The position numbers and the translations under genes are program-made. Shown here in pieces: positions 4,301-62,575 of a stretch of 64,000 nucleotides of DNA (position 1 is the first letter of the stretch; the number at the start of each line of letters is the position of its first letter). The notes beneath the pieces were generated by a model that searched no databases, was not told the DNA's origin, and saw nothing but the letters and a program-made list of their open reading frames with translations. Origin of the DNA: Hamiltosporidium tvaerminnensis FI-OER-3-3 (lineage: Eukaryota > Fungi > Microsporidia); NCBI GenBank assembly GCA_022605425.2, contig JAKIMF020000013.1:620001-684000 (forward strand), written 5' to 3'.

Positions 4301-5845
4301 ATAAATTAACCATAAATTAAAATAGTTACATGTATGGTTCGCCGGGAAGCCAATGAGCCATAAAAACATGTTATTTTTTTGTTTCCACATAAATTAGTTA
4401 AAAAATCTAGCTTTTTTCGTGTAGAAGAATGCTTCAAATAAATAATAAAATATATTTAAGCAATAAAACAAACTACGAAAAATCTTAAAAACTAGTCTAT
4501 CGTGAATATATCTGGTAAAACAACTTTCTAAAACTTAAAATATTTTATGCGAAGTTCCAATGACCCGTAACTACCTTAAAGTTGCTAGTTTTGTCCATGT
4601 TTGCAATACTACAAATATGAATAAAAAATATGATATCGATCATCAATTAAAAAATATCGGAGATTTGCACCTATTTCTCTGTATCTACTGAGAAAAATCA
4701 TGTGGTTTTAAAATTGTTCACGGTGTTTTAGGCAAGTTTGAAAGCACAAGATGCATGTTTGGAAAGATTGCCAATACCACACCCAATTTAGTTTCATTCA
4801 TAATAAAAAAACATTTGCATATGAAAAACCAATGATAATGTATAAAATGTGGTCTGGTATCATAAATACGGTTAGTAGTTGTATTTTTATTCTGCAAAGA
4901 AAAATAAATGGCCTTGAAACCGAAGCTTTTTAGAGCATTATCTATAAAAATAATCAAATACTTACCGACTGCATTAGAATATTGTAATTGTGTAAATTTT
5001 CTTTTAAAAAAGAATTTTATAGCTTCAATATTATTTGAAATCCATATTAATAATTATTTAATAGGAAAATCTGAAAATCTCCTTTAAAACTGTAAGAGTC
5101 AAAGAAAGTAATATAAATAAATAAAGCTGCTTCTCTTTTTATCTAGTAAAAAAAACTCTATTTCAATAAATTTCGTGTATTATGAAAATGAAGAGCGTAT
5201 TCTCCTTATGATATGCAAATATATCTTCTATTATGTGCAAGAAAATTTAAAAAAGAACATTAATATATTTTTAAACACTTCAAAAAAAATAACGGGAAGA
5301 AATTCCAACATACAAATTTTTGAACAATTATTTTTTTACAAAGAATGAGCTTTTATCAGAATTTCTTTGAATTTTAAAAAGCCATCAAATCTTTCTTTCG
5401 AATTCAAAGATTTACCAACTGATTTTTTAGTTTTTAAAATCTCGTTATTTACTTAAAAGACATTTCTGTGGTTATATGCTACTCTATTTCTGGAAATACG
5501 CAGAGTTGGTATGGTTTTTTAGAGAAATTTGTATTCCATAAATATAGTTATTGTTCATAGCTAATCTTTCTCATGAAACATCTAAAAACCAAAACATAAT
5601 CGAGAATGCAGATAGAAATATAATAGAAGCATCAAAATATCTAGTAAAAACCAGACACCTATTTGCGATATAAAAATAACACAGAGTAGTTAAAAAAAAA
5701 TATCTGGGAATCGCATGAGTAATTTATTTAGTTATTTCTTTTGATACTTGAAATTAATAGAATATTTCTTTTTTCATCTATATTCTGTCTTAATGATTTA
5801 GACAACTGGCTTGTACTTCTAGTTTAGAACTTGGTTGAAGATTTA

Positions 5846-13900: not shown

Positions 13901-16140
13901 AAAAATTGTTTCCGTATTTATTATTTCGATGAAACAAAAATTTTTTCTCTTGGATAGAATATAATAGACATTAACTAACCTATTCTTAAATTGTTTATAA
14001 TTATTATTATTCAAACCGAAACAAGAAATTTAGTTTTATAATAATATACTTACAATCTCTGTAGGTTTTTTTTAATAGGGTTCTGCACATCATAGTCATT
14101 TAATTGTAAGCTTCAATGGAAGTTAAATAGAAAACCAATATAAATTACCAAAAACAAAATTTTACGAATCATTTTATAATTAAATATTGCAGTTTTCTAT
14201 ATAATAAACGATTCCATTATAATTTCCAAAATCTATGATTCAAATACTTCAGCTAATGGTAAATTTAAGAAAAGAAACATTCATTTTATAGTTAAAGACG
14301 TTAATTTCAAATAAATTTCACTCAAAATAATTTATATAATTCTGGTTTGTATATATTTACGGTTTATTTAGCTTGTACTTAATATTACCTATGCATGCTG
14401 ATTTTTATTTTTTTTAGAATTTGCAATTAAACTAACTTTATTCAAGTTTTAGTATAAATATCAAATAAAAATTAAAGATATAGATTAAAAATTGTGTGTA
14501 TTATTTTTTTCGTGCAGAATTTTTCCGAATTAACATTAATAAAGCCATCAAGGTTAAAAAAAGAGGAAGGTTGGATATGGTTTAACAACTATTTTGATTA
14601 GAAAACCTTCTTTGTTTTGAAACATTCACAAAACGACTTAAATCCCATTGTAGTGGAATATGAGATTAGGATTTACTCAATAAGTTGTTAGCTGTTGTAA
14701 AACGATTTAAACAATTGCTGTTCATATACCGTGACGCGATTTAATAAATATATATGTTGTAAAGTCTTTTTTATTTCGTTTATATTTATGAATTTTTTCG
14801 TTAATTAACTAAAACAATATTTTTCGATTAATTTATCGTCATATTGCTATATGATGATTATTTTAAAACCAATTTTAATATCTCTTAATGTTATTTAATC
14901 ATTTTAGCATTAATTACCATAACATTCATATAAATATAATGATTTTTAAGAGTTTTAAATGATATAATAAACATTATAACATATATTATTCTAAAATTAA
15001 TTTAAAACCTATTTTATTATAGAAAAATATGCATTCCTTGTGATAAATCATGTTGACTGTTTGCTATATTCTTCTAAAAATAATCAAATATGCTTTTTTC
15101 TATTGTCAAAAGGGTATTACCATATAATTATTGTATATCTTCAGAATTTTTAATATTGTACTAACTTAAAATTCATATTTAAATTTAATTTTTTTAATAA
15201 AAATAGAAGTCATGAACCATTATAACTTAAATTTCAATCATTAGAAGTTTATCATTTCGCTTATTATACTATTTTATATTTTTATTATTTTTGTTCAATT
15301 TATTGAATTAATCTTATATTTCTAGTATATATTTCTTTTTAATGTAATTTGGTAACTCTGTAGTACCAAAAAACTATTATTTTTTATACTACAAAAATTT
15401 CACTTAATTCATTCTTTTATTTTAATATATTTATTTGGTTGACCGAGAAAATTATATTTGTTATTCTAAATTTTCTTAATACTAGATCCGTTAAGTTATA
15501 ACTTGAAAATCCAATTTTGCAATGGTTAACAAAAAATTATTTTAATCATTACCAAACAGAAATTTATGCTTGATACTGATTTATGATCCAAAAATTTAAA
15601 TTTTAGAATTTTATAAATAAGCTTTGTCTATCTATTTTAAACATTTGAATCATTAAATCTACCATTATTTTTTTGAGTAAATTATTATTGGCAAATATGC
15701 CTCTATATTTTGCTGTTTCATTTCTATGTAATTAGATTCATAATTCAAAACTTAGCAAATATATTATTATAACGCTATATAAAAATTTCAATTTTTATTT
15801 AATGTTCAATAAATAAAGCCACTAGTATATTGTTTTATTCATCTCATAAAGTTTTTTTTTTAAAAATTATTTATATATCCTTTAAAGTATTTTTGCGCAA
15901 GATCTATCATTTTATGAACAAAGAGACGCTAGTTAAGAAATTTTTTCTATAATGTATACATAAATTATTTTTTAAAGCAATGTATGTCCATATATTTATT
16001 ATTTTTTTTATTTATATATTATCTAAGATTGACAAATATATTCATTTTTTTTGAATTTATGATTCAAATGATTAAAACTTTAAGATCTTTGGTCATTTTT
16101 ATATTCTAAACATGAATACATTAATTCTATGATTGTATAT

Positions 16141-16842
16141 TAAAATAAAATAAAATAAAATTCGGCTTTATTGATAAAAAGTTTTCAGCACTACTCGTTG
16201 TATTGTTTTTAAAGGGAAACTAAGCTATTCATTTCCATACCATGCACCACACTCAAAAACAAAAATCCAATAAAACCGACCCGACTGTGTACAGCCACCA
16301 TATCCACATTTGGACTTCGGTTCTAGAAGGTCACATAAAAATCCCTAAAATCCCACACTTACACATTAACGTCCGGCACGTCAAGTCTTCAACATATCAT
16401 TTCTGATTTGTTAAGTCTTTAACTGTGCCGGACAAATTTGCTGCAGCCCAGCAGCTTGCCACTCCCCTTCCAAAAGCACTTTTTATACCTTTCTTTTCCT
16501 TAGTATAAGAAGATTTCAAACACAATTTGATTCCTAATGGAATCTTCGATCCAATCACATTCAGGTAGACTCATCTTGATGTTAAAGTAAGGGTTTTAGC
16601 ATCGACAAGTGCCTAGGTAAACCGAGAATCTCGTTGCGTCACAGTCGAATTTACCTCTTTGTATCGCCCCAGAAGAAATATGCTCACCGATTGAGCAACT
16701 TGCTGTTCCCGTTGGAACGGCGCTTAACGCCACGTAAACCCATAGTACATTCCGTCGTAACATAAAACGTAAAGGGGTTTTGCTTGATCACTCTTAGCAT
16801 TACCCAACGAGAACCACGTGGAGGTGGTGATCATCTCTCGTC
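16141..16842 (-). mobile_element. 702-bp non-coding ribozyme-headed SINE-like retro-insertion
   Basis: Perfect 15-bp direct repeat TCTATGATTGTATAT at 16126-16140 and 16843-16857. The 5' end (minus) is exactly G1 of the HDV-like ribozyme and the 3' end is a (TTTTA)4 tail. The body is GC-richer than the flanks, with several hairpins and no long ORF. Confidence 0.8.
16785..16842 (-). ncRNA. HDV-like self-cleaving ribozyme, copy 2
   Basis: GACGAGA GA UGAUCAC C ACC UCCACGU GGU UCUCGUU GG GUAAU GCUAA GA GUGAUCA. All HDV pairings (P1, P1.1, P2, P3) and the J4/2 cytosine (16797) are present. Identical to copy 1 at 56 of 58 positions. Confidence 0.85.
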
Positions 16843-17560
16843 TCTATGATTGTATATATTGCTATAAATTTACATTTTGATGTTATATATGGTATTTTAA
16901 CAGGTTTGGATATTTAAATATGTAGTCATCTATTAGGCCGTTATCTTTTTCATTCTTTCTAGCCTCTAGAAATTAATGGAAATATATATAATTCGTTAAA
17001 GTAAAAAATTATCGTTATTCGAACATTCCTTTAATTTATTTATGAAAAACAATTTGTGAATATTAAAAAGTTGGCGTTTCTTTAAAATAATATATACAGG
17101 TAAAGCAGAATATTACAATACAAGTCTTATATTTAAAAAATACTGAAAACTTTGAAGCATATGAAAAAAATAATAGATATGATACTAAATTTTTCTCAAT
17201 TAGAAATCTCGATGCTGTCTTTTAAAATAGTTTTTGCTTATATAAAGGAAGAAATGTATTTAAAAATCAAATTGGTAATGAGATATCCAAGCATAATATA
17301 GACTCTAGTCTTTAGAAAGTGATATTTTAAAACGTTTAGTATGTGCCTTCTTATAAGTGAGAGCTAGTGGAATTTATTAAATGCCGGATAAATGGATAAT
17401 GTTAAAAAAGCATTTGCGTTTTTTTGCTTAGATCCTTTTTGTAAGGTGCTAAAATGTTTCTTTCGTTGTATTTATCCAATTTGATTATTTTATTTAAAAT
17501 CATTTTTTTATTTACTTTTTTTTGAGTTTTATTCTTTTTAATTTTACATGCTTTTGTTGT

Positions 17561-17618
17561 TGATCACTCTTGGCGTTACCCAACGAGAACCACGTGGAGG
17601 TGGTGATCATCTCTCGTC
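17561..17618 (-). ncRNA. HDV-like self-cleaving ribozyme, copy 1, abutting the LSU rRNA 3' end
   Basis: P1 GACGAGA/UCUCGUU with a G1-U wobble. P2 UGAUCAC/GUGAUCA. P3 ACC/GGU. L3 UCCACGU. P1.1 CC/GG. Minimal P4 G-UAA-C. J4/2 GCCAA with the C75-equivalent at 17573. Confidence 0.85.
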
Positions 17619-17864
17619 ATGAGTGCTTGCTAGCCTCATCCACTCGCGATCTTGTGGATTACAGCTGCAGCACCCAAGCACGTCGTCTTCATGCTAGATA
17701 GTACAGTAGGGCCACGTTGAAGCTTAGAGGCCTTCAGCTCTTCCGTGCCAGGACGTTGCTTAGCCCGTACCTTACCAGATATAGGCACGACAAGAGGTCC
17801 TGCAGATTCGTTCCTTTCGTACTAGCATCTGCTCCCTTAGTACCGTAGCAGTAGTGTAAAACTA

Positions 17865-17902
<38 letters not shown>

Positions 17903-18006
17903 TGTTAGTGGGTGAACAATCCAACACTAGGTGCCTTCTGCTGCACCATGATAGGAAGAGCCGACATCGAAGAATCAAAAAGCAGCGTCGCTATGGTCGC
18001 TCGGCT

Positions 18007-18038
<32 letters not shown>

Positions 18039-18314
18039 ACGTCACCCATTGCTAGATGCTCTGTAAGCAATGGGATCGCTAGGCCTGGGTTTCCCCTCGT
18101 ATTACCGTGTAGTAATACGTCAGGGTGGCTTTTGCCCTTGGACTACACCCTCGGTTTCTCTCCGAAGTTAGCCACCCTTAGGCCATCTGCGTTGTAGTCT
18201 AGCAGATGTACCGCCCCAGTCAAACTCCCCATCTGACAAATACGGGTCGCTTGCACAGCTAGTGGTCTTTCAGTTGCCCCACCTTGCTACAGCTGCACAA
18301 GACCCCGGCGTCAC

Positions 18315-18351
<37 letters not shown>

Positions 18352-18448
18352 GCATAGCCAAGACCGTTCCCTTGGCTCGTGGGTTCGCAGGTTGTTAGTC
18401 GGGACAGTGGGAATCTCGTTGCTCCTTTCGTGCGCGTCACTAATTAGG

Positions 18449-18502
<54 letters not shown>

Positions 18503-20178
18503 CTGCGTATACAGCCCGACCTGTCTTAACAGCTGGGCACTGGGCAGAATTCACTTTGTGTCCACGTACTACACCACCACAAAGCTATGTTTTTATTAAA
18601 CAGTCGGATTCCCCGTAACTAAAAGTTCTAATTCCTTAGAGCTAATCCTTTTCCCGAGGTTACGGATCTAATTTGCCGAATTCCCTAACTAACGTTTGTC
18701 CTATCGCTTCCGGTATACACCGTACGGAGCCCTGCTGCGGTCGGTACGGTCATCAAGGTCATAAAGGTATTTTTTCACGGATCCCAGCTAAGACAATTGC
18801 ATATGCCTGTATTGCTCTGTACAACACGCTACATACAGTACTGCTACAAGGAATGGGTACCTCCTTGTTGTCGTGCCTAAGACGTAAACACCATATTTAC
18901 TGTTGCCAAATACCTAGATGGCTCGGGAATATCAACCCGATTCCCTGTCGAGATCTCAGGACCGGCTAACCTTCTCCTTATGAAGTCTTAGAAGAACCCT
19001 TCTCCTGAAGCCTTCGCGATTCACACACGAATTGTAACTACTACCACCAAGATCAGCACTAGTGTATGCTCCACTTTACCTCACGGTAAACCTTCTGCAC
19101 ATACACCACGCCCATCTACCTATAAGTACTGCATCGGGTCTGGCCTTGTACCGTCCATTTTCGGCGCACATGAATTCGGTAGGTACGTTGCAACACGTTT
19201 CTTACCGGATGCCAACCTCCATGGCCACCGCCCTACTGTCACAATTCATCTACGGCCTTAAGAAAAACCAGATTAGGCCCCTTATCAGTACGTCAGGTTG
19301 ATCCCTCTTCGCACGTCCTGCTTACCAGAACGCGCCCACTAGACACATATATAATCGCTATTCTTTAGTACAAGAATAACACGTACACGTTCGCAGTTCG
19401 TCGGTATGTGGAGATTGCTCCCCTTTCATCCCGCCGTTCCTCTACCGCATAATACTAAATAACTTGTGTCTGCTGTCCTAAGAGACATTTCGATGGGAAC
19501 CAGCTACCCGGCTGTTCGATTGGTCTTTCGCCCCTACACCCAGCTCAAACCATCGATTTGCGCGTCAGAACAAGTTTAGGTCCTCCACCATCCTTTCGAA
19601 TGGCTTCAACCTGGCCAGGTGTAGTTCACAGCCCTTCGGGTCGCATCCGAACAGCTATATCTGCTTTCGCTACGCTTAAAGGAAACCCCCCTTTAACTTG
19701 CTATGCAGATGCACTCCTTGGTCCGTGTTTCAAGACGGGTCCTGTTATCAGGATACTCAATACAATTTCACGTCTTTGCACTTTTTAGCTTTTCACCTTT
19801 CCATCGCTGTACTATTACGCTATCGGTCTCCGCTCATATTTAGCCTTAGATGGAACCCACCACCTCTTCAGGCTGCATTACCAAGCAACCCTACTCTGCC
19901 CATTACTCGTCACTACGGGGCTATCACCCTCTATGGCTTACCTGTCCCGGTAATTCGTTACGACGATCTTAACAATGCCCGGAGGCTTACATTCGGGGCT
20001 ATTTCTTGTTCGCTCGCCGCTACTACAGAAATCCTAGTTAGTTTTTGTTCCTCCCCTTAATAATATGCTTAAGTCCAGGGGGTAGTCAGGCATTTACAAA
20101 TGCCGTTCGGCCTTAGTTCTCGGAAACTATTCCGGCCTTCCTCGGATACGGAGCCAAGTGATCCCTTGTATGAGTTTA
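17619..20178 (-). rRNA. Large subunit rRNA with fused, shortened 5.8S-like 5' segment
   Basis: Universal LSU motifs on the minus strand: GACTTAAGCATAT, CCCGTCTTGAAACACGGACC, TTAAGGTAGCCAAATGCC, GGGATAACTGGCTTGTGGCAGCC, GAGCTGGGTTTAGACCGTCG and the sarcin-ricin loop AGTACGAAAGGAAC. 5.8S-like start AACTCATACAAGGGATCACTTGG. Ends approximate. Confidence 0.97.
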
Positions 20179-20210
20179 AAATGAAAAAACTACACAATAA
20201 AAGTACTATC
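20179..20210 (-). other. Very short internal transcribed spacer
   Basis: About 30 nt of AT-rich sequence between the SSU terminal GGATCA and the 5.8S-like start. Confidence 0.8.
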
Positions 20211-21512
20211 ACTGATCCTGCTGCAGGTTCTCCTACAGCAACCTTGTTACGACTTGTATCCAATCTAATCCTACGTCCTCAGAAGGAAAACCCTCTTCGA
20301 ACATAGCACCATCTTAGATAACGACGGGCGGTGTGTACAAAGAACAGGGACGCAGTCGTCGCCCGTTAGTGACACGCGACTACTAGGAATTCCTGGTTCA
20401 TGCGTCCATTACAGAACGCAATCCCAACCGAGTTATCCTTTATCTTTACAATATACCTAGAAATAACATTGTAGTGCGCGTGCAGCCCAGAACATCTAAG
20501 GGCATCACAGACCTGTTATAGCCCCCTCCTTCCTGAAACTTATAGTCCCCAGTCGCCGTAGCTGAGGGTCTCACACATTACAGCAATAAACCTAAAAGTC
20601 ACCTCACATGTTGTGAACGGCCATGCACCACTTAGTCGTACTCATCAAAGATTCGTCATACAACTGGCCCTGGTAAGTTGTCCCGCGTTGAGTCAAATTA
20701 AGCCGCACACTCCACTCCTGGTGGTGTCCTTCCGTCAATTTCTTCAAGTTTCAATCTTGCGATCGTACTATCCCCATAGCCCATATACTTGATTTCTCGT
20801 GGGTACCACTACGTAACACCCAGTTGGCATAGTTTACGGCCGGAACTACAGGGGTCTCTAATCACCTTTGCTCCTCCGGCTTACGTCCTTGATCACCGGA
20901 AACGTACTGGACGACAGCTTTCGCTTCGGTTTGTCCTACGTAGGTCGTCAACTTTCACCTCTCGCTACGCAATACAGTCGCCCTCTTCCGCTCCTACATG
21001 CTAACCTAGAATGCCAATACACTCCATGAAGAAAGTGTCTTCTAGCATCCCTGTCAACACTGACTACGGACCTTTTAAATGCAGCAATGCACTATGACAC
21101 TCCTGGAGCTGGAATTACCGCGGCTGCTGGCACCAGACTTGCCCTCCAGTCAATCACCGGTATTCTACCCCGGTTACAAAATATACGTCTCATAACTGCC
21201 TCTCTCCAATTGGGCAAGTTTCGCGCCTGCTGCTGTCCTTAGACCTGGTAGCCGTTTCTCAGGCTCCCTCTCCGGAATCAAACCCTGATCCCCCGTACCC
21301 GTTAAAGCCATCGTACGCCCTTACCGTACGATAAAACTGATGGGTCGGCGTCTTACTCGTGTTATTAGCCACAGTTTCCCGCGGTTATCCTTCCTACACG
21401 ATTAAATAATCACCGTTCTACTGAGCCGTTCGCAGTTCCACTTTCGCTTCACCAGACTTGCATGGCTTAATCCCAGAGACAAGCATCCTCGTCAGGCAGA
21501 ATCAACCTGTTG
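20211..21512 (-). rRNA. Small subunit rRNA (~1.3 kb, microsporidian reduced type)
   Basis: Starts CAGGTTGATTCTGCCTGAC. Contains GTGCCAGCAGCCGCGGTAAT, AAACTTGAAGAAATTGACGG and TTGTACACACCGCCCGTC. Ends GTAACAAGGTTGCTGTAGGAGAACCTGCAGCAGGATCA. Confidence 0.98.
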
Positions 21513-23121: not shown

Positions 23122-23853
23122 TTACTTTATTTAAAAGTATCACATCTTTTTTAAAACAGTGGCAAGTGTTATATTTGTTTTCATGACATTAACGCAGTTC
23201 TAGGTTTAACATAAATAACTGCTACCCCAACACTCCATCGGTAACCCCTGCGATACCTACGTCCCAAAGCCTTTCATCTACCAGGTGTGTAGAACCTAAT
23301 TACTAGGCGAGGCAGTTGCCCGGAGTTCGTTAATGTCCGTTGCATGGAGTGTGATCGAAGGCCGAAGCCCCCCCTGGGCTCCCCCAAGACTATGCAGCAT
23401 TCCCACTTACTCTACACTTTCTGAACCCAATAAACTTCTAGCTAAGATATATTTCAGAGATTTACATGGGGTCCACCTAGACAGTGCAATGTCATACCAA
23501 CAGGTATAACCTGCTACTTAGCTTTCCTGGCTTTATATGGTTTTTATTTTTATATCTCCCAGGCGCTAAGTCTTCTAACCCGAGTGAGCAAGGCTAGGTT
23601 TCCATGCTTTTACATGGCAATTACCTAAATTTTAAGCTGCGGTCTGCAATCTGGTTACATAAAAAACTACAAATAAATTTGTAGAAAAAGTTTCTCCATC
23701 TCTTAGACCTCCCCTCCTCATAACAACTCCCAAGGAACAACCAAAGATGTAGTGTGGTTTTATTCCCACCAAAAATCCAAACAATGATCTCACACCAGTT
23801 TCACACACTCATTGCCAAGCAGAAAGTTTTTTATGTGGTTATCCTCCCTCCAC
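23122..23853 (-). mobile_element. ~730-bp SINE-like non-autonomous element, full copy
   Basis: Near-identical to the 36046 and 63443 copies. 14-bp TSD TTCTTTACTTTTAA at 23108-23121 and 23854-23867. Starts GTGGAGGGAGG and ends AATAAA/A-rich on the minus strand. No conserved ORF and no terminal inverted repeats. Confidence 0.85.
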
Positions 23854-26800
23854 TTCTTTACTTTTAAAATATATAATATATATTTATTGAAAATCTGCAT
23901 ATTAGGCACCACATGATATCCACATTTCATATTCTTCTTTATGTTCTTAACAGATTATCTGAAACCTGTTATATTTACGATAAGAAATAATCGTTTAGAA
24001 GGAGTTAACACACTGAAAAAACTTTTTAGTTAGAATTTTTTCTATTTTAATACATTTGCATTGTGAGATATTGAATTCTGTTATTTTAATGGAGCAATTA
24101 AGAACTTTAATTATGTTCAAATATTGTTTTTTGTTTTTATCCAAACTACAAATGTTACAATTGTCAGAAAAATTTTTATTGTTTTCTTAAATTCCCAAAG
24201 TAATTATTTTTACATATAAATCTAAAGTTATATAGTTTTCGATCTGCTTTTTTTCCCTTTCTTTTACATTTTAACATATAAATAAAAATATGCACAGTAA
24301 ATACCTCGATTTAAGTATATTGTTTATTGTGCCAAGATTGAAAAATTAGATAAAATATTTCATTAAGATTTAACCGCACATGTAATGAAATCGCATTAAT
24401 CTTTTCCAATCTCAATACATTTAATTTTCAATTTTTCATTCAATAATTTAATTTTCATTTAAAGAAAATACCTTGTAGAAAAAGTAAAAAAGATGCATTA
24501 CATAAGAATATAACTTGTTGATTTTAGAAAAAAAAAAAACGAATTATTGTTCCTACTAAAATTTATTTATTTAATAAAATTCAGACTTATACCTTTTTTT
24601 ATCGTTTTCATATATTTTTTTCCACGGTTTTACTGAAATAAATTCTAAAATAATTCTAAAATAATTATACATTCATTTTTCTAAATAATATCCAATTTCA
24701 GATAATATTTTTTTCGAAAAAAAACTTATGAAGCAAAATTTGATTTAAATATTTTCATTTGTTTAAATGATTACCTTATAAACCTGTATTATAAATGATA
24801 TTCGAAAAAACTTAAATTTAAGAAAAAATAAAAATATGTTCTCTAACCCTTACTCAAAAAGAAAAGAGCATATATTTTTGTGTAATTATTTTTCTTTATA
24901 ACTGGAACTAATACCAGCGGGTTAGTTCTTATTTTTAGATGTTTTGTTTTACTATTTATGAAATTTTGAATTTTATTTACATCCTAACAATTATCACTCA
25001 ATATATCCGGAAAGCGACAAGTATACGTAAAAAATATTTATCAATCAGCACTATGAGAGTATTTCATTTATAAACATTTCGAATAAAATAAGACGATTAT
25101 ACATCATTAAATATGGATTGGGGAATGTATGTTTTAACAATGTATTGGAATAAAGCGAATTATGTAACACTTGTTTAGTTAAATATGTACTAAGTTTGGG
25201 AATATCTGAAACAAAAAGACAGTTATGGCTTTATACAAATAATATCAAGTAAGATTTCCCAATTAAAAGTTCGATTCTAGAGGCAGAAAATGTTTTAAAA
25301 AATAATATCATATCAAAAAAATCAACAATGCAGCATTATAAATTGTTTGAGGTCTATTAAAATCATATTTTTCAAAAAAAAATAATCCTAAAAGACGTTT
25401 TGCAAAAATTGCTATCTACATCTCGATTATCTACTTATTTGAAAATTTAAGAAGTAAAACACATAATTAAAAAAATTATGGAATATTTAACGTTTAGTTT
25501 ATTCTTAATGTTTTACCAGCTCACTTCTGTATTTATAACTAGCAAAATTAAAATTATTTATGAAATCTATACGAGTACGATTCACATTCGAGAAATTATT
25601 TACAAAGAATGAATTAAATAAACTTATATATATTTCGAAAGAAGTTTTAAGTCGATTTTATATTATAAAATCAATTTCAATAATTTTGGTCATAATTTTG
25701 CATATAATAAAAATCTTTGTCTACTTCCAAAAGAAATATTACTACAATCTTTGATCCAAGAATTTGCTAAAGGTAAATGTTAGCTTCGTTCAAAAGAATA
25801 TATTTGCATTTAGGTTTTATAAGAATTTTCATATATTACACATACATATTTTAAAATAAATATACTATTTAAATATTTTGAGCAAAGTAATTTGTGAGCA
25901 TAATGGTCATATTTTTGTTTAATCTGAAAACAAATTTAAAAAAATAATACCTTTTTATAAAATACGGGTGAAGAGAAGATAAACACATTAAAAACTATCT
26001 CGTAGGCGATTAGTGTGTAAAATTGTTTTGAAAATAATTGTTGGCATTTTGGTGAAATATAAACTACACTGGTTCTATAGGCAAATCCCCTATTCCCAAG
26101 TTACAACAGATTAAAAGAAATTGGAAAATTTCCAGTTGTTCGTCCTCGACACTGAGAGGTAAGATGGGAATGTAATAAGTGAGTAAATAAGTATAAAACA
26201 CATTATAATCAAAAATGGATCTCAAATTAAAATATATTTAAGTGTTTATTTTATAGAAACCTAGCTAGAAAACAGTTATGAAATAAAAGCACTTGGACTC
26301 CTAAACAAGATCATTGAATCTTAAGGCAGAGAATGAATATAATAAGAAATTACTAAAGAATAAATACAATATAAACGATCTGGCATATATAATTTGGTGA
26401 CAGGAGTAAATAAACCACTTAATAATAATTTGAATATATGTCAAATAATATATAAATTTATCAGCATATTTCTTTAAATTTTCAAAATATTCTGAACTTT
26501 AAATGAATAACTTAAAATCTTTAGGAAGCAAATATTTTGATTTTTAGTTCGGTTAAAAGAAAATATTTATCCCAAAATTGTATTGCCGTTATAAATCATA
26601 CAATCTAAATAAAAACTATTTGGCAACGAAATACACAATATTAATTTATTTCTTTCTACAGTGTGAATATTCGAAAATTAAAAATCCCTATTTTTTTATT
26701 TCATTCTTATAATACTAACCTTTACTCTTTAGAAACGAACTTTATTTTTCATTTCACAAAAAAACAAAAAAAATGCCGATTAGCTGCTATACCGTCATTA

Positions 26801-30477: not shown

Positions 30478-32383
30478 CGAGAACACAAGCAATTCATATT
30501 GCTACATACATACATACACAACAAAGAAGAATAAATATTTATCAATGAATACTCAAAGGTAAATAAAACAACCGAAATTAAAGCTTGAGATCAAAATAAG
30601 GAAAAATATTTAAATACGATAGAATATGAATGTGAATAAAGCCCGCAAAAACAATCTCTCATAAAATATCTTTTATATTTTAGTTGAATATTTGTAAAAT
30701 GTATAAGATTGGAAATTTGATCCAAATAAATTTTAACTTTTGCCTCAATGCATATTTAAAATGATGATTATTTTAACAATTCTTTAATTTCGAATAAAGA
30801 TAATTTTCGAAATTTCAATATTTTATACGAGCTATGAAATAGGAAAACTGATAGAACATGTAAAAAATCACAATATAAACCAATAAAATCTATAGTTTTT
30901 ATTTGATTTTTTGTTTTTTAAAAAAAAGGGCGCAATTTATTTCTAACTAGATTATAAAAAAATCTTTTGGGTAAATCCAAACATTTCCAGATGTTCGTAA
31001 TGTATCTTTAATTTATTATATTTCAGACAGGTAAAACAAAACTAAAAACTGAAATCTATACTTTACAATCTGAAAACATTAAATTTTTGATTCATTAACA
31101 GTAAGCACTATTAATTTATCTTTCGGATTTCTTTTATATAATTATACTTAAAATAAAAAAAGCTCTTGTAAAAAATATTCACAAAGAATTACAAATATAT
31201 TTGATTCATTCTTTATATAAAGAAAAATTGGTTTACAAAAATATACAAAGTAAATTCAAATAAAAAACTGCATTTAAATTGGTTGGATATGAGCACCAGT
31301 ATTTATTAAAAAGCTTAATGTTCATATATATCGTCAAAGAGACCCGATCATATATTCTGGCATTTCTGCTCTTTAAAACTAATGATCTATCAAGTAAATT
31401 AAATTAAAACCACTAATAATACTCTGTTTTACAAATAAAAGATATTATTATTTTATTGAGAATATAAGTTAGGATTATTGTCAAAAATATGAAATTTACA
31501 AAAAATAGAAATATTATTCTTTTTTTTTAGTTTGAACTCTTAATATAATATGAAAATACATTATTACATAAAAATCTAGCGGCTATGATTATAAAAAACT
31601 CCGAAAAAAATTTAAATGTCTGCATCTAAGCATATTTAGATATTCAAAACTTTCTATAAAAATATTCGAATATAATTCTAAATTATTTCAAATTCGCAAT
31701 CTCTAATTCTAAAAATATTATGTTTGTCTTAAATTATGAGAAAAATAACTTTGTATTTAAACAAGATAAAAAAGGTTATTACATTCACTATATTAACTTC
31801 ATTTTAGTATATTTTAACTTTTTACTTCGTTTAGTAAACTTTTAATTATTTACTAAATATAAGCAAGAAAATATTTTTCTATGAACTAATTGGCAATAAA
31901 CCATATAAATATTCTTATTTTTAGAAATTAATTTGTTAAAACATTCAGAGGAATTACCTGACCAAATCAAAAATAGACTATATGCAATTTTTCAAAGCTT
32001 TATTTGAAATTTAAATATTAATTCAGTTTTATAATATACAACCTTAAACCGGAACTTTTCGAAAATATATTTTTTTAAAACAAAAAGAATTTTTCTATTT
32101 AACGAATTTGCTGGAAATAAAAACAATAAGATTTTTATTTTTATGTGTCAAATGGTACAATATATTTAAATATTTTATTCGACTAAGAACCTTTTCAACC
32201 AGAGTAAACAAACATTTGAATAAAACATTCAGGCGAAAATAAATATAAATGTAGTAAACCAAGTAAACAGAATTATAAGCAAAATATATTTTAAATCTAT
32301 TTTCCATAGATTTAATTATTAAATTGATCTTTACTTTGTATATTTTAATTGCTTATAATACATTTTTATAATATCTAGGACTA

Positions 32384-33681
32384 TTTAATAAAATTCTGGG
32401 TTAAAATATTTTAACATTTTTATATGTTTTCTTCTACCTCTTTAACCACTATTGTTTCTTCTTCCAAATCCGACTCTTCATTTATGTTATTGGTCGGTTC
32501 CTCCAGAGTGGTTCCTCCTTGTGAAATAAGGGGTGTATTATTTTTTGGTTTTAAAATTTTAACACCATCTTCCTCTCTTTTCGCTTCTTTTAAAGGGGGT
32601 ATTGGTTCCTCATGCATCTCTGATCTCATAATAACACCCATTGACGCTCTCTCCCAGCTCTCTTCGGCATTTAGTCCTGACTCAAGTCCTCTTCGTCGAT
32701 CAAAGGAAATTGTTTCGACTGTCTTCTTAAGTACTATAGACTGAATATATGTCTCTATATTTATGGGTATTTCTAGTCTTTTAAGATGAGATTTATGGTA
32801 TTTTGTCACAATACCGTCCCAGATCATTACATAAGGGATTATCTCAACACTACACTTATAAATAAGACCTAACTCATTGGCTAGCAGGTCATACTTCCTA
32901 AGTTTTTCAGTTTCAACTATTTGAAGTGAATCTTGGGAAGTGATTCCTACTTCAATAAGTGTTATCTTATTCTTCTTCTTATCTAAAATAAATATATCGG
33001 GTCTGTTATTCCGAATTTTAACATCAGTTTTTATTCTGGTATCCACTCTTATCTCTGCATACTCATTATCAAAAATTTCTTGAACTGAGTGACTCCTTAT
33101 TCGTTTTGAAGACTTAAACTTATATCTATTTAGAAGAAGTAGGTGTAGGCATCTAACCACTTCATTGTGTCGTCTAGTATAGTCATGACCTAGCATTTTT
33201 TCACATCGAGTTGCTAGATGATCTACGGTCTTACCAGACTTCCCGCAATGTTGATACACACCATCTGCTCCCCAGAATACATTTCTATCCTGGATATAGC
33301 AGAACATAGCTTCGTTGTGTGGCCTAATATTCCCTCTCTTTAACCATCTTGAAGAGTCACTAACACTCACTTCAAGTTCATTTTTCCTTGCATTATATAA
33401 CTTTGAATAGAGTTTTCGTTTTTCTATTTCTTTATATATTTTTGCCAGTTGAGCATCTTCTAAACTTTTCTTAGTGACTTCTTCTACTAACCTGTACTTT
33501 ACTTTTAAGAAACCTTTTATTAGTGCAAGATGTATTTTCTTATTATTCTGAACCTTGAGGATTGCTGCTCGTCTAGTTGATATTTCTTTTCTTTTTTTAG
33601 ACGATCAAAGAGTTGGAAAAGCAGATGTTCGCTTCGCAACTCAACACTATGTAGGCCTCTTCCAAGTTCTGTTCTAGGGAG
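32384..33681 (-). mobile_element. 5'-truncated non-LTR retrotransposon with restriction-like endonuclease (RLE class)
   Basis: 10-bp TSD TCTAGGACTA at 32374-32383 and 33682-33691. Begins in the post-RT region (LPRTELGRGL) and has a frameshift upstream of the 32420-33370 ORF. Confidence 0.85.
32420..33370 (-). pseudogene. C-terminal CCHC knuckle plus PD-(D/E)xK endonuclease portion of a non-LTR RT protein
   Basis: (C>Y)QHC...DHLATRC knuckle, RHNEVV motif, and RPDIFILD...LIEVGIT...EKLRKY. The RT core is absent because of the 5' truncation. Confidence 0.85.
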
Positions 33682-34522: not shown

Positions 34523-35689
34523 TTAACTCAAAAGCATACCGAAACCACTCAACAACACAAAAATATGCCCATAAAAATTTACATTTTTCCAAATGGAAAA
34601 TGTTTTATCTAAATCCAGGGTGATGAATGGAACAGAAAAATAGGAAACTATTGCCATCATTTGGAATAAACAAACAAATTTACAAATTGAATCGTTGAGA
34701 TATTTTTTATAAATTCTTATGTTGTTTCTTATGAAGGGTATAATGAGACCAAAACTTAAGAACATAAGGAAATAACACCAGTTTAAACCATGCCATATAG
34801 CAGAAACAAAAAAGGTTGCTAGACTGGCCATAAAAATCGAATATCCTTTTAAAGGAACGAATACGCAATCTTTAAGCCACTTATTTGTACAGATATTCCA
34901 TGAATCTGTAACACCTTTGATATTTGTAGAAAATTCCACACTTAACGGAAAAATATTTTTTTGATTTGTATATCCATCCAATGAAAATACAGAATGTGCA
35001 AAAGTCCAAACAAAATAGTACTTACATCTAAAACCGAAGCTAAATACATACAGAAACAAAAAATTCTTAAAGAAATTACTTTTTTGCATTTCCAACATTT
35101 TTTCAACACTAAACTTACTTCTTATAAGTAAATGAAGTCCCATAAAAATAAAAGACTCCATTAATACTCGAAGTGAGAACAAAATATATTTTTTAGTTTG
35201 TTTTGGTCTTTCAATAAATCCTTTAAATGATGGTGCTGGACCTACCAAAATACTGGGAAGATAAAAGATATAACTTATAAGATTATAAATGGTGTGCGTA
35301 GAAAAATCATACTCCTTTCCCAAATAATACATCTTGATTACGAGCATCATTAGAGGTCCACTTATATTTGGCCCGAGTCTTTCACCATAAATTCCTTTAA
35401 TAAAATTATTCAATTGTTGGTATAAAAGTAAACCAAGAATATTACTTCCAGTCATTATAAAACGTATTCTTTCAGTTCGTTTGAACAAATATAAGACAGA
35501 AAGATTTGAAAAAACAACTACCAAAAAGAAGATTACGTCAATAATACCAAATGCTATCAAAATACAACATAAGCTAAAAAGAGGAAACAAATTTGTTCTT
35601 TTTGTCAATTTTAAACCGAAAGTAATAATATATGTTAGAAAAAGTGCAAGAATATATCTAAATTCCGGCATTTCTACTATTTTGTTCAT
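34523..35689 (-). CDS. MBOAT family lysophospholipid acyltransferase (Ale1/LPCAT-like)
   Basis: 388-aa protein with multiple TM segments. Motifs YLPSILVGP, KYYFVW, SWNICTNKWLK and catalytic SAIWHG. CCC immediately before the ATG. Confidence 0.92.
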   Translation of the reverse strand: MNKIVEMPEFRYILALFLTYIITFGLKLTKRTNLFPLFSLCCILIAFGIIDVIFFLVVVFSNLSVLYLFKRTERIRFIMTGSNILGLLLYQQLNNFIKGIYGERLGPNISGPLMMLVIKMYYLGKEYDFSTHTIYNLISYIFYLPSILVGPAPSFKGFIERPKQTKKYILFSLRVLMESFIFMGLHLLIRSKFSVEKMLEMQKSNFFKNFLFLYVFSFGFRCKYYFVWTFAHSVFSLDGYTNQKNIFPLSVEFSTNIKGVTDSWNICTNKWLKDCVFVPLKGYSIFMASLATFFVSAIWHGLNWCYFLMFLSFGLIIPFIRNNIRIYKKYLNDSICKFVCLFQMMAIVSYFSVPFITLDLDKTFSIWKNVNFYGHIFVLLSGFGMLLS

Positions 35690-36045: not shown

Positions 36046-36773
36046 TTTTATTTAAAAGTATCACATCTTTTTAAAATAGTGGCAAGTGTTATATTTGTTT
36101 TTATGACATTAACGCAGTTCTAGGTTTAACATAAATGACTGCTACCCCAACACTCCATCGGTAACCCCTGCGATACCTACGTCCCAAAGCCGTTCATCTA
36201 CCAGGTGTTTAGAACCTAATTACTAGGTGAGGCAGGTGCCCGGAGTTCGTTAATGTCCGTTGCATGGAGTGTGATCGAAGGCCGAAGCCCCCCCTGGGCA
36301 CCCCCAAGACTATGTAGCATTCCCACTTACTCTACACTTTCTGAACCCAATAAACTTCTAGCTAAGATATATTTCAGAGATTTACATGGGGTCCACCTAA
36401 ACAGTGCAATGTCATACCAACAGGTATAACCTGCTACTTAGCTCTCCCGGCTTTTAATGGTTTTTATTTTTGTATCTCCCAGGCGCAAAGTCTTCTAAAC
36501 CGAGTGAGCAAGGCTAGGTTTCCATGCTTTTACATGGCAATTACCTACATGTTCAGCTGCGGTCTCCAATCTGGTTACATAAAAAACTACAAATAAATTT
36601 GTAGAAAAAGTTTCTCCATTTCTTAGACCTCTCCTCCTCATAACAACTCCCATGGAACAACCGAAGATGTAGTGTGGTTTTATTCCCACCAAAAATCCAA
36701 ACAATGACCTCACACCAGTTTCACACACTCATTGCCAAGCAGAAAGTTTTTTATGTGGTTATCCTCCCTCCAC
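36046..36773 (-). mobile_element. ~730-bp SINE-like element, full copy
   Basis: Highly similar to 23122-23853. 13-bp TSD GCAATATTAGAAG at 36033-36045 and 36774-36786. Confidence 0.87.
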
Positions 36774-37637
36774 GCAATATTAGAAGAAGAAATAAATTAA
36801 ATAATTTCTTTCTATGATATTAAACACAAGTTGAAATGAATATTCTTTAGAAATTCAGATGGATTTTTTTAAAATACTAAAAATTAGATCTAGATAGTTG
36901 CCATATTTTAAGATAAAAACATATTTTATAATCTATGGCGCTACTCTTCAAAAAATCTAAAAATATATATTTAAAATTCTTGAAATAATCATTTATTCAA
37001 TTTATTAAATATATATATAAATTCTGATATAAAATCTTTAACTACAAAATTATCTCAGCCTCTTTTAAATATGGAAAATACTTAAGATTATATTTTAAAT
37101 CAAGAAATATACTTTATTGCTAAATTCTGACATTATATAGTGGAAATAAGTAAAAATGCGCCTTTAAAAAAAAAAAGATCAAAGATCTTGTAATAAGAAT
37201 CTAGAGACCGGTATGGAAAACCAGTATTGGCGTATTTTATTAGTAATTTACAACCCTGTAATAAATTTAAAGCAATGAAAATAAACTTTAATTAGAATAA
37301 AAGTGTATTATAAGCAAACATATGCATTTGTACTTGAGACTTTATCATTTTAAAAAAAAATATTTTCAAAAAATTTGAAATTTTTCTCAATTGATCTACA
37401 AGGCAATATTTTAAAATTTAATTCACTTAGTTTTTAGTTCTGATTCTGTAATGCAAGATATAAATGTTTGTAAATTTCTTTCGCCTTTTAGAAACTTCTA
37501 AATGAACAAGTTAGTTTTTTCCTAAAGTAATTATTTATGTATTACATCCAATTTAAAATCATTTTCGCACGGTTTTATTTATATCATAAAAAAAGAAAAA
37601 CATGGAAATTAGAAATTTACATAGTCTTTCATAACTC

Positions 37638-38353
37638 TTTATTTAAAAGTATCGCATCTTTTTTGAAATAGTTGCAAGTGTTATATTCTTTTCATGATAA
37701 TAGGACAATTCTAGGTTTAACATAAATAACTGCAACCCAAACACTCCATCGGTAACACTGCGATACCTACATCTCAAAGCCTTTCATCTGCCAGGTGTGT
37801 AGAACCTAATTAATAAGCGAGGCAGTTGCCCGGAGTTCGTTAATTTCTGTTGTATGTAGTGTGATTGTAGGTCCAAACCTAGTCAGAATTTCCCTGAGAC
37901 TATGCAACATGTCTACTTGCTCTACTTTTTTCGGACTTCTAAAGTTCGGGTCAAGATATATCACAAGGAGTTACATGGTCTTTCCTAGACATTGCAATGT
38001 CGTACGAACAGGTATAACCTGCTTCTTAGCTTACCCGGCTTCAAAAGGTTTTTTAACCAAGAAACTAAGTCTCTAACTCGAGTGCACAAGGATAGATTTT
38101 CATGCTTTTACATGGGAATTGCATACATGTTCAGCTGCGGTCTGCAATCTAGTTTCATAAAAAACTGTAAAATAAATTTGTAGAAAAAATTTCGCCATTT
38201 CGTAGGCCCTCTTCTTTACCTACCAACTTCCATGGAACAACCGAAAATATAGTGTTGTTTTATTCCCACTAAAAATTCCAACAATAATTTCATACACCAA
38301 TTCATCTATTCATTGCCAAGCAGAATGTTTTTTATGTGGTTATACTCCCTCCA
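37638..38353 (-). mobile_element. ~730-bp SINE-like element, diverged copy
   Basis: Colinear with the 23122 and 36046 copies but with many substitutions. No clear TSD. Confidence 0.8.
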
Positions 38354-40950
38354 GTTTCATTGGGTTTCTATATTTTTCAATACCTTTAAGCTAAAAACAA
38401 AAAATATATGATTTTTAATTTTCATTTGTAACGAATATAAGTTTACCGTTAGGAATCGACGTAATCTGAACGGAAATGATGGCTATGAACTAATCTTACT
38501 TCTTCCAAACCACTACTCTTTCTAGAAAATGGAATAGCTTTTCACATATTAGGAATTCTAGTAAGATTTTAAAATAACGTTATTTGGCTGATTTTTTTTT
38601 TCTGAACCATTAGGAAATAAGGTATATCTAAATAATAAAATTCATTACAAAAGACTTTCATGTAACACTCCATGTTTACATAAATTACGGCAGATGCACA
38701 AAAAATAAAATTTTTGAACCCAATCAGTTGTCCAATTAATTGATTTCAAATGCGAACAACTAAATTTTGTTTAAAAAACATTTAATTACAAGGGTTTTTA
38801 GATATTTTAAACCAATCTATGTTTTCGTAGATATATTCTTAACGTTATTTTTGTCTTTAAATATTTCTTGATGATGCAAATATATAGAATTCTGTTTCAA
38901 ATTTATGCTTTTTAGACGCATATTTATTTGTAATTTTAATATTTGTTAAAATGCAATTAAACTTTTTTACAGGGATTTATATCTTTAAATTAATTTTTTT
39001 TTCATTGCGATTTCATTTATCTTTGTCAGATAATTAACATAAAGAAGATTAGGAATCATCATTTAAAATTAATTAATGTTGAATATATTTTCTACATTAG
39101 AGAAATTATTCTTATAAATAAATAAAATATTGCTTTAGATTATACTTTTAAAAATGCAAATTCTCTAATATTTTTGCTTTAAACATATTTGATCTGATTT
39201 ATAACTTTATAAGTAATTCTAACATAATTACCAAGTCTCATATCTGTTCATCTTCAAAAAAACATTTGCATTTACAAATAAATTCATAAAATAATTTATG
39301 AATTTATAAAAAAATAAAATAGACAGTATTAATTATATTTTCTATTTGGATTCATATGTAATTACCAAATGATTCTAAAATTAAGTATAATTTGCATTTC
39401 AAAATAACAAAAAATTTTGGCTTATTAAATTCACTTTACATGTGTTAAATTAGTGTATCAAACTTGAGCAAAATTTGTAATTAGTTGCAAATTCTAAAGA
39501 AATTTCGATTATTTTTCGAATATAAAGAACAATAAGTTGTAGTGAACATGGAAAGATTTCCAAAATAATATTCTAAATTTATCATCGTTTGATTCAGGTT
39601 CACATTTTAAATATCAAAAAATATTTTATAGCTTTCCATCTGTCGCAAGAATTTCATAAACCAATTTGACTCGATTTTTTGTAGTTTTACTTAATATTGA
39701 ATAATACCAACAACATTTTAATGTTAACGATTTATTTTTTGTGTTTCCCTTTATATTTTAATCAATTATTAAAGCCCTAAACTTAAAATATTATAGGTTT
39801 TGATGATGATACGGTTTAGTTTGTCTTATCCATTTAAAGAATTATATAAACGCATTTATACTTTTATTAGAGAATTTTCTTATACATTGATTTATAAAAA
39901 TATTCCGATTTCGTTTATATTTTATATTGTTTATTATACTTCGATACTAACGATTAGTAAATTTATTATGTTCATAAAATTATTGTTCTGGTTTATGACG
40001 GTTTATAAAGGGTTTTTTTGTTAAATTTTATTAAATTTCAGATTATCAAATTAAACTCAATCTTGAAGCATACAAAAAGATATATGCCGATTTATTTATT
40101 AGAATTAATTATAAATAAACACTGATTATTCGATCTTACATTTCGATGTTAATTAACTAATTTAAAAACGTTTATACATAATATAACCTATATATCACAA
40201 AATTCCACTAAGAGTTTTCTAAGTACGAACGAATAATTTTTTTTGGAAATTAAGAGGAAAAAAATGAAAATCAAAGAGTAATTTGAGTTTTTATATTAAA
40301 TACACAATGTTATAAACGCATATGGAACTATCGCCCAAGTAATATATTAAGTTTTGAGCTGGGTTGACAGCATAAGTCGAAAGAAAACTTCATGAACCGT
40401 CTAAAAAAAATCTTCAAGTTTTATTTCATTCTTGTACTGTTCTATCATGCGTATGGAAAGAAGAAAGCTATGAATATCTACTAGATTGTAATTACGCTTT
40501 TACATATAAGAATAAAAAAATCATAAGATTTGAAGTCGTAATATTGGCTTGAATACAAGGAACACGAAAGACGAGAAAAAATCTAACAACGAACTAAGTA
40601 ATAAAGAATTCTCATTTCTATTCTGAATTTTAGAATATAGTTTAGAAGTTTGTAAGTTGAAAGACTTATTTATAACATCAAAGGTTTTATATATTTAAAT
40701 AATATTTAGAAAGATAGGCAAATAATCAAAGTTTAATTTAGACGTGACTTGTGCGAGAACAAACTATCATTCAATCTTTCTATATAAAGAATCACAAATG
40801 GTCAAAAAAACCAAGCTAAATAGTCCCAGAGATTAGTCTAAATCTTTTTTGTAAAGATATTTCGTTTTTTGCCATTTAAAATTTTTATATCTTTAATATG
40901 ATTCTTTAATTCGATTGTTTTGCTAACATTTATACTTTTAACAAAAATTC

Positions 40951-41302
40951 GAAGACAGTCGAAACAATTTCCTTTGATCGACGAAGAGGACTTTAGTCAG
41001 GACTAAATGCCGAAGAGAGCTGGTAGAGAGCGTCAATTGGTGTTATTATGAGAGCAGAGATTCATGAGAAACCAACACCCCCTTTAAAAGAAGAGAAGAG
41101 AGAGGAAGATGGTGCAAACAATTTTAAAACCAAAAAATAAAGCACCCTTTATTTCAAAAGGAGGAACCACTTTAGAGGAACCGACCAATAACATAAATGA
41201 AGAGTCTGATTTGGAAGAAGAGACAATAGTGGTTAAAGAGGTAGAAGAAAACATCTAAAAATGGTAAAAATATTTTAACCCAGAATTTTATTAAATAAAT
41301 TG
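40951..41302 (+). mobile_element. Short 5'-truncated copy of the same RLE non-LTR element (3' end only)
   Basis: Matches the reverse complement of ~32384-32727 with stops. 12-bp TSD TAACAAAAATTC at 40939-40950 and 41303-41314. Confidence 0.85.
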
Positions 41303-44480: not shown

Positions 44481-45200
44481 GGTAGGTACAGGATTATTAC
44501 AATAAAACTTTTTACTTGGCAATGGATAGGTGAAGTCTGGAATATTCGTTTGTATTTTTAGTTGGAAAAAAACCACACTATAATTTCATGTGTCTCATGG
44601 GATTTTTATGAAGAGGAGAATATCATTAAAATGGCGAAAGTTTTTCTAACAAATTTACTTTTAGTTTTTTATGTAACTAGATTGGAGACGGCGGTTGGAG
44701 TTGTCGGAAATTGCCATATAAAAGCATGCAATCTAGTCTGGCACATTCTGTTTAGAAGACTTAGCCTCTGTGTGATATGAAAATAAAAACTATTTAAAGC
44801 CGTGATAGCTAAGTAGCAAGTTATACCTGTTGGTATGACATTGCACTGTCAGGTAGACCTCATGTAAGTCTCTAAAATATATCTTAGATGGAAGTAAATG
44901 AGGCTCAGAAAATGTAGAGTAAGTGAGAATGCTGCATAGTATTGGGGAAGCCATGTGTTGGTTTCGACTTAAAATCACACACCATGCAACGAATATTAAC
45001 GAACTTTAGGCGATTGCTTCATCTAGTAATTAGGTTCTACATACCTTTTAGATGAAAAGCTTTGGGACGTAGGTATCTTAGGGGGTACTGATGGTGTGTT
45101 GGGGCAGCAGTTATTTATATTAAACCTAGAATTGTGCTTATGCCATGAAAGGAATATAACACTTGCCCCCTTTTAAAAATATGTGATACTTGTAAATAAT
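44481..45200 (+). mobile_element. ~730-bp SINE-like element, old inverted copy
   Basis: Reverse complement of the family along its full length (e.g. gttatacctgttggtatgacattgcactgtc; ctttgggacgtaggtatc; taaacctagaa). Confidence 0.8.
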
Positions 45201-47186: not shown

Positions 47187-47340
47187 TTAACTATCTAACT
47201 ATCTAAATATCTAACTATCTAAATATCTAACTATCTAAATATCTAACTATCTAACTATCTAACTATCTAACTATCTAACTATCTAAATATCTAACTATCT
47301 AACTATCTAACTATCTAACTATCTAAATATCTAAATATCA
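47187..47340. repeat. 8-bp tandem repeat (TAACTATC/TAAATATC)n
   Basis: Directly visible array of about 19 units. Confidence 0.9.
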
Positions 47341-47599
47341 TCACTATCTAATAGTTTAATCTTTCATTGTTATTCCCCTTTTTTTTTATCAAATTTTAAT
47401 AAGTTTAATCAGAGTATGTCTTCTTGTATTAGAATTATTTATATTTACATCTTATCATTGTATGATTGATTGTAGAAATATTTAATTTTATGAATATTTA
47501 ATATTTATACTAGTTATAGATTTATAATAAGTTACTATTTAATATGTAAATAACTTATCATTCCTGTAACTAAGAAATATATTGCATATTTGATAGACT

Positions 47600-56149: not shown

Positions 56150-56262
56150 TTATGATACTCAGATACTGTGATGCTTAGATACTATGATACTCAGATACTG
56201 TGATGCTTAGATACTATGATACTGTGATACTATGATACTTTGATTCTGTGATACTTAGATAC
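56150..56262. repeat. GATACT-based microsatellite-like array
   Basis: gatact(ca/gt/at) units in tandem. Confidence 0.85.
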
Positions 56263-62200: not shown

Positions 62201-62337
62201 TCACACATTAATTTATTTTTAATTTTAATACTTTTTGATATAGATTATATCCTTTTTTAGAAATAAATATAAAAAAATTTTCATTTAAAAAAAATATTTA
62301 ATTAAATTAATTAAAAAGATATTGCTATATTATTAAT

Positions 62338-62575
62338 AAAAGAATATTAAAAACATATAAAAGAATATAAAAGAATTTAAAAGAGTATAAAAGATTATAA
62401 AAACATGTAAAAGAATATTAAAACATGTAAAAGGATTTAAAAACAAATAAAAGAATATTAAAACATGTAAAGATTATAAAAACATATAAAAGAATATAAA
62501 AACATGTAAAAGATTATTAAAAACAAATAAAAGATTATAAAAACGTATAAAAGAATATAAAAACGTATAAAAGGT
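62338..62575. repeat. Degenerate 10/20-bp A-rich tandem repeat
   Basis: Repeated taaaagaata/taaaaacat(g)ta units. Confidence 0.75.

Follow-up and report, generated by a model that had tools for sequence, protein, structure and literature searches.

The rDNA unit and the element behind its LSU gene

The window that we analysed is a stretch of 64,000 nt from the genome of the microsporidian Hamiltosporidium tvaerminnensis FI-OER-3-3 (contig JAKIMF020000013.1, positions 620,001 to 684,000). A single microsporidian rDNA unit is encoded on its minus strand, and a 58-nt ribozyme fold begins 2 nt past the last LSU helix (Table 1). Elsewhere the window carries a dispersed repeat family of ~700 nt with five copies in both orientations (23148-23855, 36068-36775, 37658-38356, 44535-45179 and 63463-63995), two inverted repeat arms of ~350 nt that are 89-93% complementary and lie ~8.2 kb apart (32382-32726 and 40951-41297), and short-period tandem repeats of 8, 8 and 10 nt (47143-47379, 56137-56280 and 62307-62622, respectively). 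Open reading frames were found for a Polo-like kinase with internal repeats (48248-50476, plus strand, 742 aa) and for an MBOAT acyltransferase (34523-35689, minus strand, 388 aa).

Table 1. Features of the rDNA unit and its 3' spacer (positions in the window)
Feature	Position	Strand	Remarks
SSU rRNA gene, microsporidian type	20210..21512	-	Rfam RF02542, 1208 bits
LSU rRNA gene up to predicted cut	17619..20105	-	Rfam RF02543, 1742 bits; model end 17617
LSU terminal helix (H101 equivalent)	17621..17675	-	closing pair G17675-C17621; closing pairs p 0.99-1.0; from model alignment
2-nt linker AU	17619..17620	-	predicted cut between 17619 and 17618
Minimal P4-less HDV-like ribozyme	17561..17618	-	G1 = 17618; 58 nt; in 10/10 rDNA units
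P1	17618-17612/17588-17582	-	7 bp, opening with G1-U wobble
P2	17609-17602/17569-17561	-	bulged A17568
P3	17601-17599/17591-17589	-	3 bp
L3	17598-17592	-	
P1.1	C17597/C17596 with G17580/G17581	-	
Catalytic-position cytosine (HDV C75 equivalent), first base of J4/2	17573	-	invariant
AT-rich 3' spacer	16858..17560	-	~13% divergent between units; frequent LINE/SINE insertion site
5' copy of 15-bp target-site duplication	16843..16857	-	ends exactly at G1 of second ribozyme
SINE, 702 nt, non-autonomous	16141..16842	-	ribozyme head, pieces like LINE ORF2 end and 3' UTR, T/A-rich repeat tail
Second ribozyme copy, head of SINE	16785..16842	-	56/58 nt identical to LSU-adjacent copy
3' copy of target-site duplication	16126..16140	-	

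The element has the fold of a minimal HDV-like ribozyme

The first-pass annotation had described a double pseudoknot at this junction, and each of its elements (P1, P2, P3, L3, P1.1 and J4/2) was present on the minus strand where it had been placed. In P2 the seven pairs proposed there hold (17609-17603 with 17567-17561), but an eighth, C17602-G17569, which lies beyond the bulged A17568, had been overlooked. The supposed 1-bp P4 is better read as the absence of P4, because one rDNA copy and one phage/viral look-alike carry an A in place of the pairing G. P3, L3 and P1.1 have the usual sequence of HDV-like ribozymes, and C17573 was constant in all aligned Hamiltosporidium and viral copies, followed by either C or U. 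By structural definition the 58-nt element is an HDV-like (delta-like) ribozyme: it has the nested double pseudoknot, the L3 and the catalytic C followed by N-A-A.

The Rfam HDV models contain P4, which the element lacks, and it scored below the family cut-off in all three models (26.4 versus 50 bits for RF00094, 24.9 versus 44 for RF02682 and 13.6 versus 37 for a third HDV-type model), each of which aligned to it from end to end. Our own HDV descriptor matched twice in the window and never in 20 block-shuffled versions of it (both strands). A chance motif is ruled out by this and by the fact that all 15 matches in the genome adjoin rDNA.

When the fold was predicted in the context of the LSU tail (pair probabilities, nested pairs only), P1 formed with a probability of ~0.9 and upstream LSU bases paired into the ribozyme with a probability of ~0.01; no block of P1 by the LSU tail is predicted. 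The match to the eukaryotic LSU model stops at 17617, no more than 2 nt from the predicted cut, and its last two positions fall inside the ribozyme.

The ribozyme is present and nearly invariant in all ten rDNA units

The assembly (21,638,905 bases, 17 contigs) contains ten rDNA units, arranged as five tail-to-tail pairs, an arrangement also seen in G. vavrai; ten rDNA operons at five places around specific LINE repeats have been reported for this species (PMC12449221). The ribozyme was found at the identical junction in 10 of the 10 units. A motif missing from most other rDNA copies, which the first-pass annotation had named as a possible outcome, is thus not what the genome contains, and a one-off insertion is ruled out as well. 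An assembly artefact is unlikely, given that the ten copies are spread over four contigs and that 14 public runs contain at least half of the words of 16000-19000. When four runs were compared with 17000-17840, one gave a single, identical LSU contig, which ended at 17678, 60 nt before G1, and none of the four reached the predicted cut.

A DNA search and a pattern search of the genome returned exactly 15 intact ribozyme copies, ten at LSU ends and five at the head of a SINE, and a whole-genome scan with the RF02682 covariance model returned exactly the same 15. Across the rDNA units, 1 of the 58 ribozyme columns varied versus 95 of 266 gap-free columns in the following 300 nt, and the mean pairwise difference was 0.003 versus 0.135. 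Slippage and long-read error inflate the diversity of the A-rich, fast-mutating spacer. With one chimeric copy left out, 6 columns varied in an alignment that joined the ribozyme to the last ~0.9 kb of the LSU, and the ribozyme was roughly as invariant as the LSU rRNA itself. All positions of the catalytic core were intact in the ten units, and variation began 2 nt past the last P2 pair. The edge of conservation thus coincides with the 3' end of the ribozyme and not with that of the rRNA, which is the pattern that selection on the ribozyme would predict. The contrast between ribozyme and spacer points to such selection, while gene conversion among rDNA units can drag neutral sequence along.

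In one unit a segment of the LSU (L006/L069, G000:C1:1234089-1234976) is GC-rich and only ~84% identical to the others, with identity regained for the last 240 nt; it looks like an assembly chimera with a foreign 28S.

SINE insertions in the rDNA spacers begin exactly at G1

The only intact ribozymes that do not adjoin an LSU gene head the five copies of a 700-nt SINE in the same rDNA spacers; in the window, G1 of this second ribozyme lies 776 nt downstream of the LSU-adjacent G1. The five copies represent three independent insertions, all of which begin at G1, and two of these lie between perfect 15-bp duplications, which end precisely at G1. Target-primed reverse transcription copies an RNA through to its 5' end. 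The SINE junctions are therefore a record of RNA that began at G1, as expected from a ribozyme, and they are indirect evidence that the SINE copy is cut at G1 in vivo. The two differences between the SINE and the rDNA ribozymes are both outside P1, P2, P3 and P1.1, and both base states occur in natural viral minimal ribozymes. An identity of 56 out of 58 nt suggests either recent exchange between the two or strong constraint on both.

With its ribozyme head, target-site duplication, LINE-shared tail and no open reading frame, the element in the window is a ribozyme-headed SIDE-like SINE. A piece of the ORF2 end, a piece of the 3' UTR and the tail are common to the SINE and its partner LINE, an APE-RT element with two ORFs (448 and 1130 aa). 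Full-length LINE copies are confined to the gaps between paired rDNA units: each pair has a central copy, and two more recent LINE insertions lie ~370-380 nt behind G1. In total, 9 of the 10 rDNA spacers carry an inserted LINE or SINE at most 1.7 kb from the cut; in the unit without a nearby insertion (L066) the ribozyme is intact. The co-location of LINEs and rDNA is on record, with no mechanism proposed (PMC12449221).

On the autonomous LINE copies of this genome, neither the descriptor nor sequence comparison found a ribozyme. Nor was an element body found behind the LSU-adjacent ribozyme, where tblastn with the LINE proteins drew a blank on the spacer. An intact element that starts at this ribozyme is ruled out, as the similarity to the SINE stops within a few bases past P2.

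Two further observations concern these spacers. A fourth SINE insertion, degraded and with a broken ribozyme head, lies ~545-1130 nt behind G1 in L067 (G000:C14); its many small deletions may reflect uncorrected long-read sequence. In three units (L064, L066 and L068) a 10-nt word of the LSU tail recurs 5.4-6.1 kb behind G1, ~270 nt before the central LINE (chance in shuffled sequence, 0.002). We weighed an old target duplication as its source and did not accept it.

Related LINEs and similar ribozymes in other genomes

A contig of Trachipleistophora hominis with a homologous LINE contains an HDV-like ribozyme (L092:4394) whose P3-L3 core is identical and whose P4 is long. This canonical ribozyme lies in a nest of LINE insertions (region 4367-4598), and the contig has no rRNA; a 27-nt copy of the P4/J4-2 end of the ribozyme is found just upstream, as if elements insert into ribozyme sequence. 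Two other contigs have an HDV-like ribozyme in the leader of a more distant LINE (L090) and at the head of a short element (L093); a 13-nt word common to this element and the leader of the Hamiltosporidium LINE is a weak match. In a different microsporidian (JGI contig, L075:1-6417), a homologous two-ORF LINE begins ~190 nt behind the LSU terminal helix. Its leader contains, ~55 nt past the helix, a possible variant HDV-like fold (929-990), seen by eye, which has a mismatch in P1 and a one-pair P1.1 and is not detected by Rfam. The related LINEs group together in a protein tree (SH-aLRT 96), which is a hint only, from a quick, unfinished search with long branches. LINEs of this group thus accompany such ribozymes and, in at least two cases, lie behind an LSU gene.

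Minimal cores that are almost identical, with compensating changes in the pairs of P1 and P2, occur in viral contigs, in one case just behind a tRNA-Arg; the covariation counts mix unrelated viral sequences and so speak for fit to the family, not for descent. On one IMG/VR contig, whose GVMAG label denotes a giant-virus bin, tRNA-Arg is followed by a minimal HDV-like ribozyme and then by tRNA-Asn (L098:8456-8662), as in a theta-type arrangement. The viral minimal cores fit the theta ribozymes (PMC10879173). A BLAST search with the ribozyme found no significant match among phage records.

The first-pass annotation had proposed a search for the motif in the rDNA of other microsporidia. Pattern scans of metagenomes and prokaryotes, with narrow patterns and on rDNA flanks that assemble poorly, are weak for this purpose and found no second species with an LSU-fused ribozyme; L075 has only its variant fold. 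The 13 metagenome matches and one prokaryote match to the junction patterns are chance. Contigs of H. magnivora and of a second isolate cover the central LINE and not the LSU end.

Searches of the genome found a Dicer and no Rnt1

The first-pass annotation had also raised the question of whether the genome encodes Rnt1/RNase III. In searches of the genome with PF00636 and PF14622, the sole RNase III-domain protein was a 1245-aa Dicer; these searches, which a highly diverged Rnt1 could escape, found no stand-alone single-domain RNase III or Rnt1. The genome does encode one Rex-type (RNase T-family) exonuclease and one Clp1-family kinase, so trimming after a cut would be possible.

A probable ribozyme cut at the LSU 3' end

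What, then, does the element do? It is probably an active minimal HDV-like ribozyme, linked to a retroelement and kept by the host, that cuts the pre-rRNA where the mature LSU ends or right beside that point. HDV-type cleavage chemistry is established. As Pol I passes the LSU gene, the ribozyme would fold and cut 5' of G17618, leaving an LSU precursor that extends 1-2 nt past the terminal helix and ends in a 2',3'-cyclic phosphate, and a spacer RNA that begins with a 5'-OH. Such a cut would stand in for the one that Rnt1 makes in yeast, and would yield the mature LSU end directly or after slight polishing. The ribozyme is common to a family of rDNA-spacer retroelements, its most likely source; the same cut would free SINE and LINE RNAs from read-through transcripts, and the LINE machinery could use the spacer RNA. 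We infer that the rDNA copy cleaves, that its cut coincides with the mature end and that the host depends on it, and likewise the direction of its origin and any part in termination.

The first-pass annotation had proposed that the LSU 3' end arises by self-cleavage between 17619 and 17618. This proposal is partly supported, by indirect evidence: the ribozyme is present in 10 of the 10 units, conservation has a sharp 3' edge, the searches found no Rnt1, and a copy identical at 56 of 58 nt shows retro-insertions precise to G1. The tie to SINE and LINE had been missed.

We consider it unlikely that the ribozyme is active but selfish, i.e. the retained head of a retroelement that had inserted at the LSU end, spread to all units by concerted evolution because its cutting is harmless, with the host LSU end made independently and the release of LINE and SINE RNAs from Pol I read-through as its main role. 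Such a history would fit the facts that the only other copies head the SINE, that insertions lie close behind the cut in 9 of 10 spacers, that no ribozyme is found on the autonomous LINE copies themselves, and that contigs with related LINEs carry HDV-like ribozymes, one such LINE lying just behind the LSU of another microsporidian. However, selection on the element leaves unexplained why 58 nt are identical at the level of rRNA in each unit with an edge at the last P2 pair, and the LSU copy has no element body and is retained intact in the insertion-free unit.

It is much less probable that the host uses an active ribozyme for a first cut only, as an entry site for termination or trimming, and that exonucleases set the mature end a few bases upstream. 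In yeast the 3' ETS is cut and then trimmed, and the Rex-type exonuclease and the Clp1-family kinase would suit this order of events; yet only 1-2 unpaired bases separate the terminal helix from the cut, so there is little left to trim, and the cyclic phosphate, which blocks most 3' exonucleases, would hinder them. Marginally less probable again is a relic that is inactive or rarely cleaves in the rDNA context and is kept identical by gene conversion, with a mature LSU that possibly extends into it. The sub-threshold Rfam scores and the two LSU model positions inside the ribozyme are in line with a relic, as is the precedent of other ribosomes, in which the short helix H99 uses bases after H101. 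Against it stand the catalytic core, intact in all ten units, the precision of the SINE junctions at G1 and the very low probability of an alternative pairing into the ribozyme.

To return to the favoured reading of a host-kept ribozyme that cuts the pre-rRNA, both the origin of this ribozyme and some of its function may have to do with the retroelements. Because ribozymes with the same core accompany related LINEs elsewhere, we favour a LINE-borne ribozyme that became fixed at the LSU end; capture by the SINE of an older rDNA ribozyme is a less favoured alternative. Transfer from a phage is not required, because loss of P4 from a LINE-type ribozyme gives the same form. We are evenly divided over a stronger version, in which a retrotransposon-derived ribozyme has been domesticated as an obligatory 3' step of pre-rRNA processing that replaces a lost RNase III, the LSU end is made by RNA, and the LINE-borne ribozymes behind the LSU of other microsporidia are earlier stages.

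To our knowledge, few host functions are known for small self-cleaving ribozymes. In the literature that we searched, outside of which lie many subscription papers, no small ribozyme was described in the maturation of cellular rRNA, and no paper, PMC12449221 included, reported a ribozyme at this LSU junction; the first-pass annotation had likewise known of no such description. Ribozymes of this class are known, as are SINEs with a ribozyme head; a copy fixed behind every intact rRNA gene is undescribed in that literature. Microsporidia have lost about half of the ribosome-biogenesis factors of yeast, and their ribosome assembly has been called an open question (PMC3919561). If our reading is true, the ribozyme is a concrete answer for one step in building a microsporidian ribosome, the LSU 3' end, and a mobile-element ribozyme has been recruited for a housekeeping job. 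It would also explain the clustering of LINEs and SINEs behind the rDNA (PMC12449221).

Comparison with known systems

In structure the element resembles the theta ribozymes of gut phages (PMC10879173), which share the absence of P4, the short J1/2 and L4, and the same P3/L3/P1.1/J4/2 core. Like them, the element would cut at the 3' end of a stable RNA, and viral look-alikes of equal length have the same P2 with a bulged A. The upstream RNA, however, is a eukaryotic LSU rRNA here and a phage tRNA there; the element lies neither in a phage genome nor at a tRNA 3' end. No matches were reported from the eukaryote set of the theta survey, i.e. human, mouse and protists (PMC10879173). By analogy, the element would work like a theta ribozyme and is classed otherwise by its context, and the likeness may be convergence after loss of P4.

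In the R2 ribozyme and its derivatives with internal deletions (PMC3774820, PMC3414825, PMC6765202), an element RNA is freed from a Pol I rRNA co-transcript, and non-autonomous copies likewise consist of a ribozyme head and the tail of the autonomous element. R2, however, inserts at one site inside the 28S and interrupts the gene, whereas here the sites are scattered behind the gene, the LINE is an APE-RT element with two ORFs in place of a single ORF with a restriction-like endonuclease, and an element-free ribozyme is fixed in every intact unit. Only in the SINE, and not at the LSU, does an element body begin with the ribozyme. The LSU-adjacent ribozyme may work like that of R2, as an exit from the Pol I transcript, outside the context that defines R2. 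L1Tc, RTE and Baggins (PMC6765202) are also APE-type LINEs or SINEs in which an HDV-like ribozyme generates the 5' end of the RNA, but they have no described tie to rRNA 3' ends and no described fixation in host genes.

The functional counterpart is the Rnt1 cleavage of the yeast 3' ETS and the accompanying Pol I termination (PMC3045592, PMC2948184), in which the transcript is likewise cut co-transcriptionally just behind the LSU. The protein Rnt1 makes its cut further downstream, past the mature end, with a 5' phosphate as product, whereas the cut predicted here is RNA-catalysed, lies 1-2 nt from the last helix and would produce a 5'-OH and a cyclic phosphate. When a hammerhead ribozyme replaced the Rnt1 site of a yeast Pol I minigene, termination was nearly as good despite the 5'-OH product (PMC3045592). 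The substitution of a ribozyme for Rnt1 would therefore be mechanistically feasible, and by the same analogy a role of the H. tvaerminnensis ribozyme in Pol I termination is plausible.
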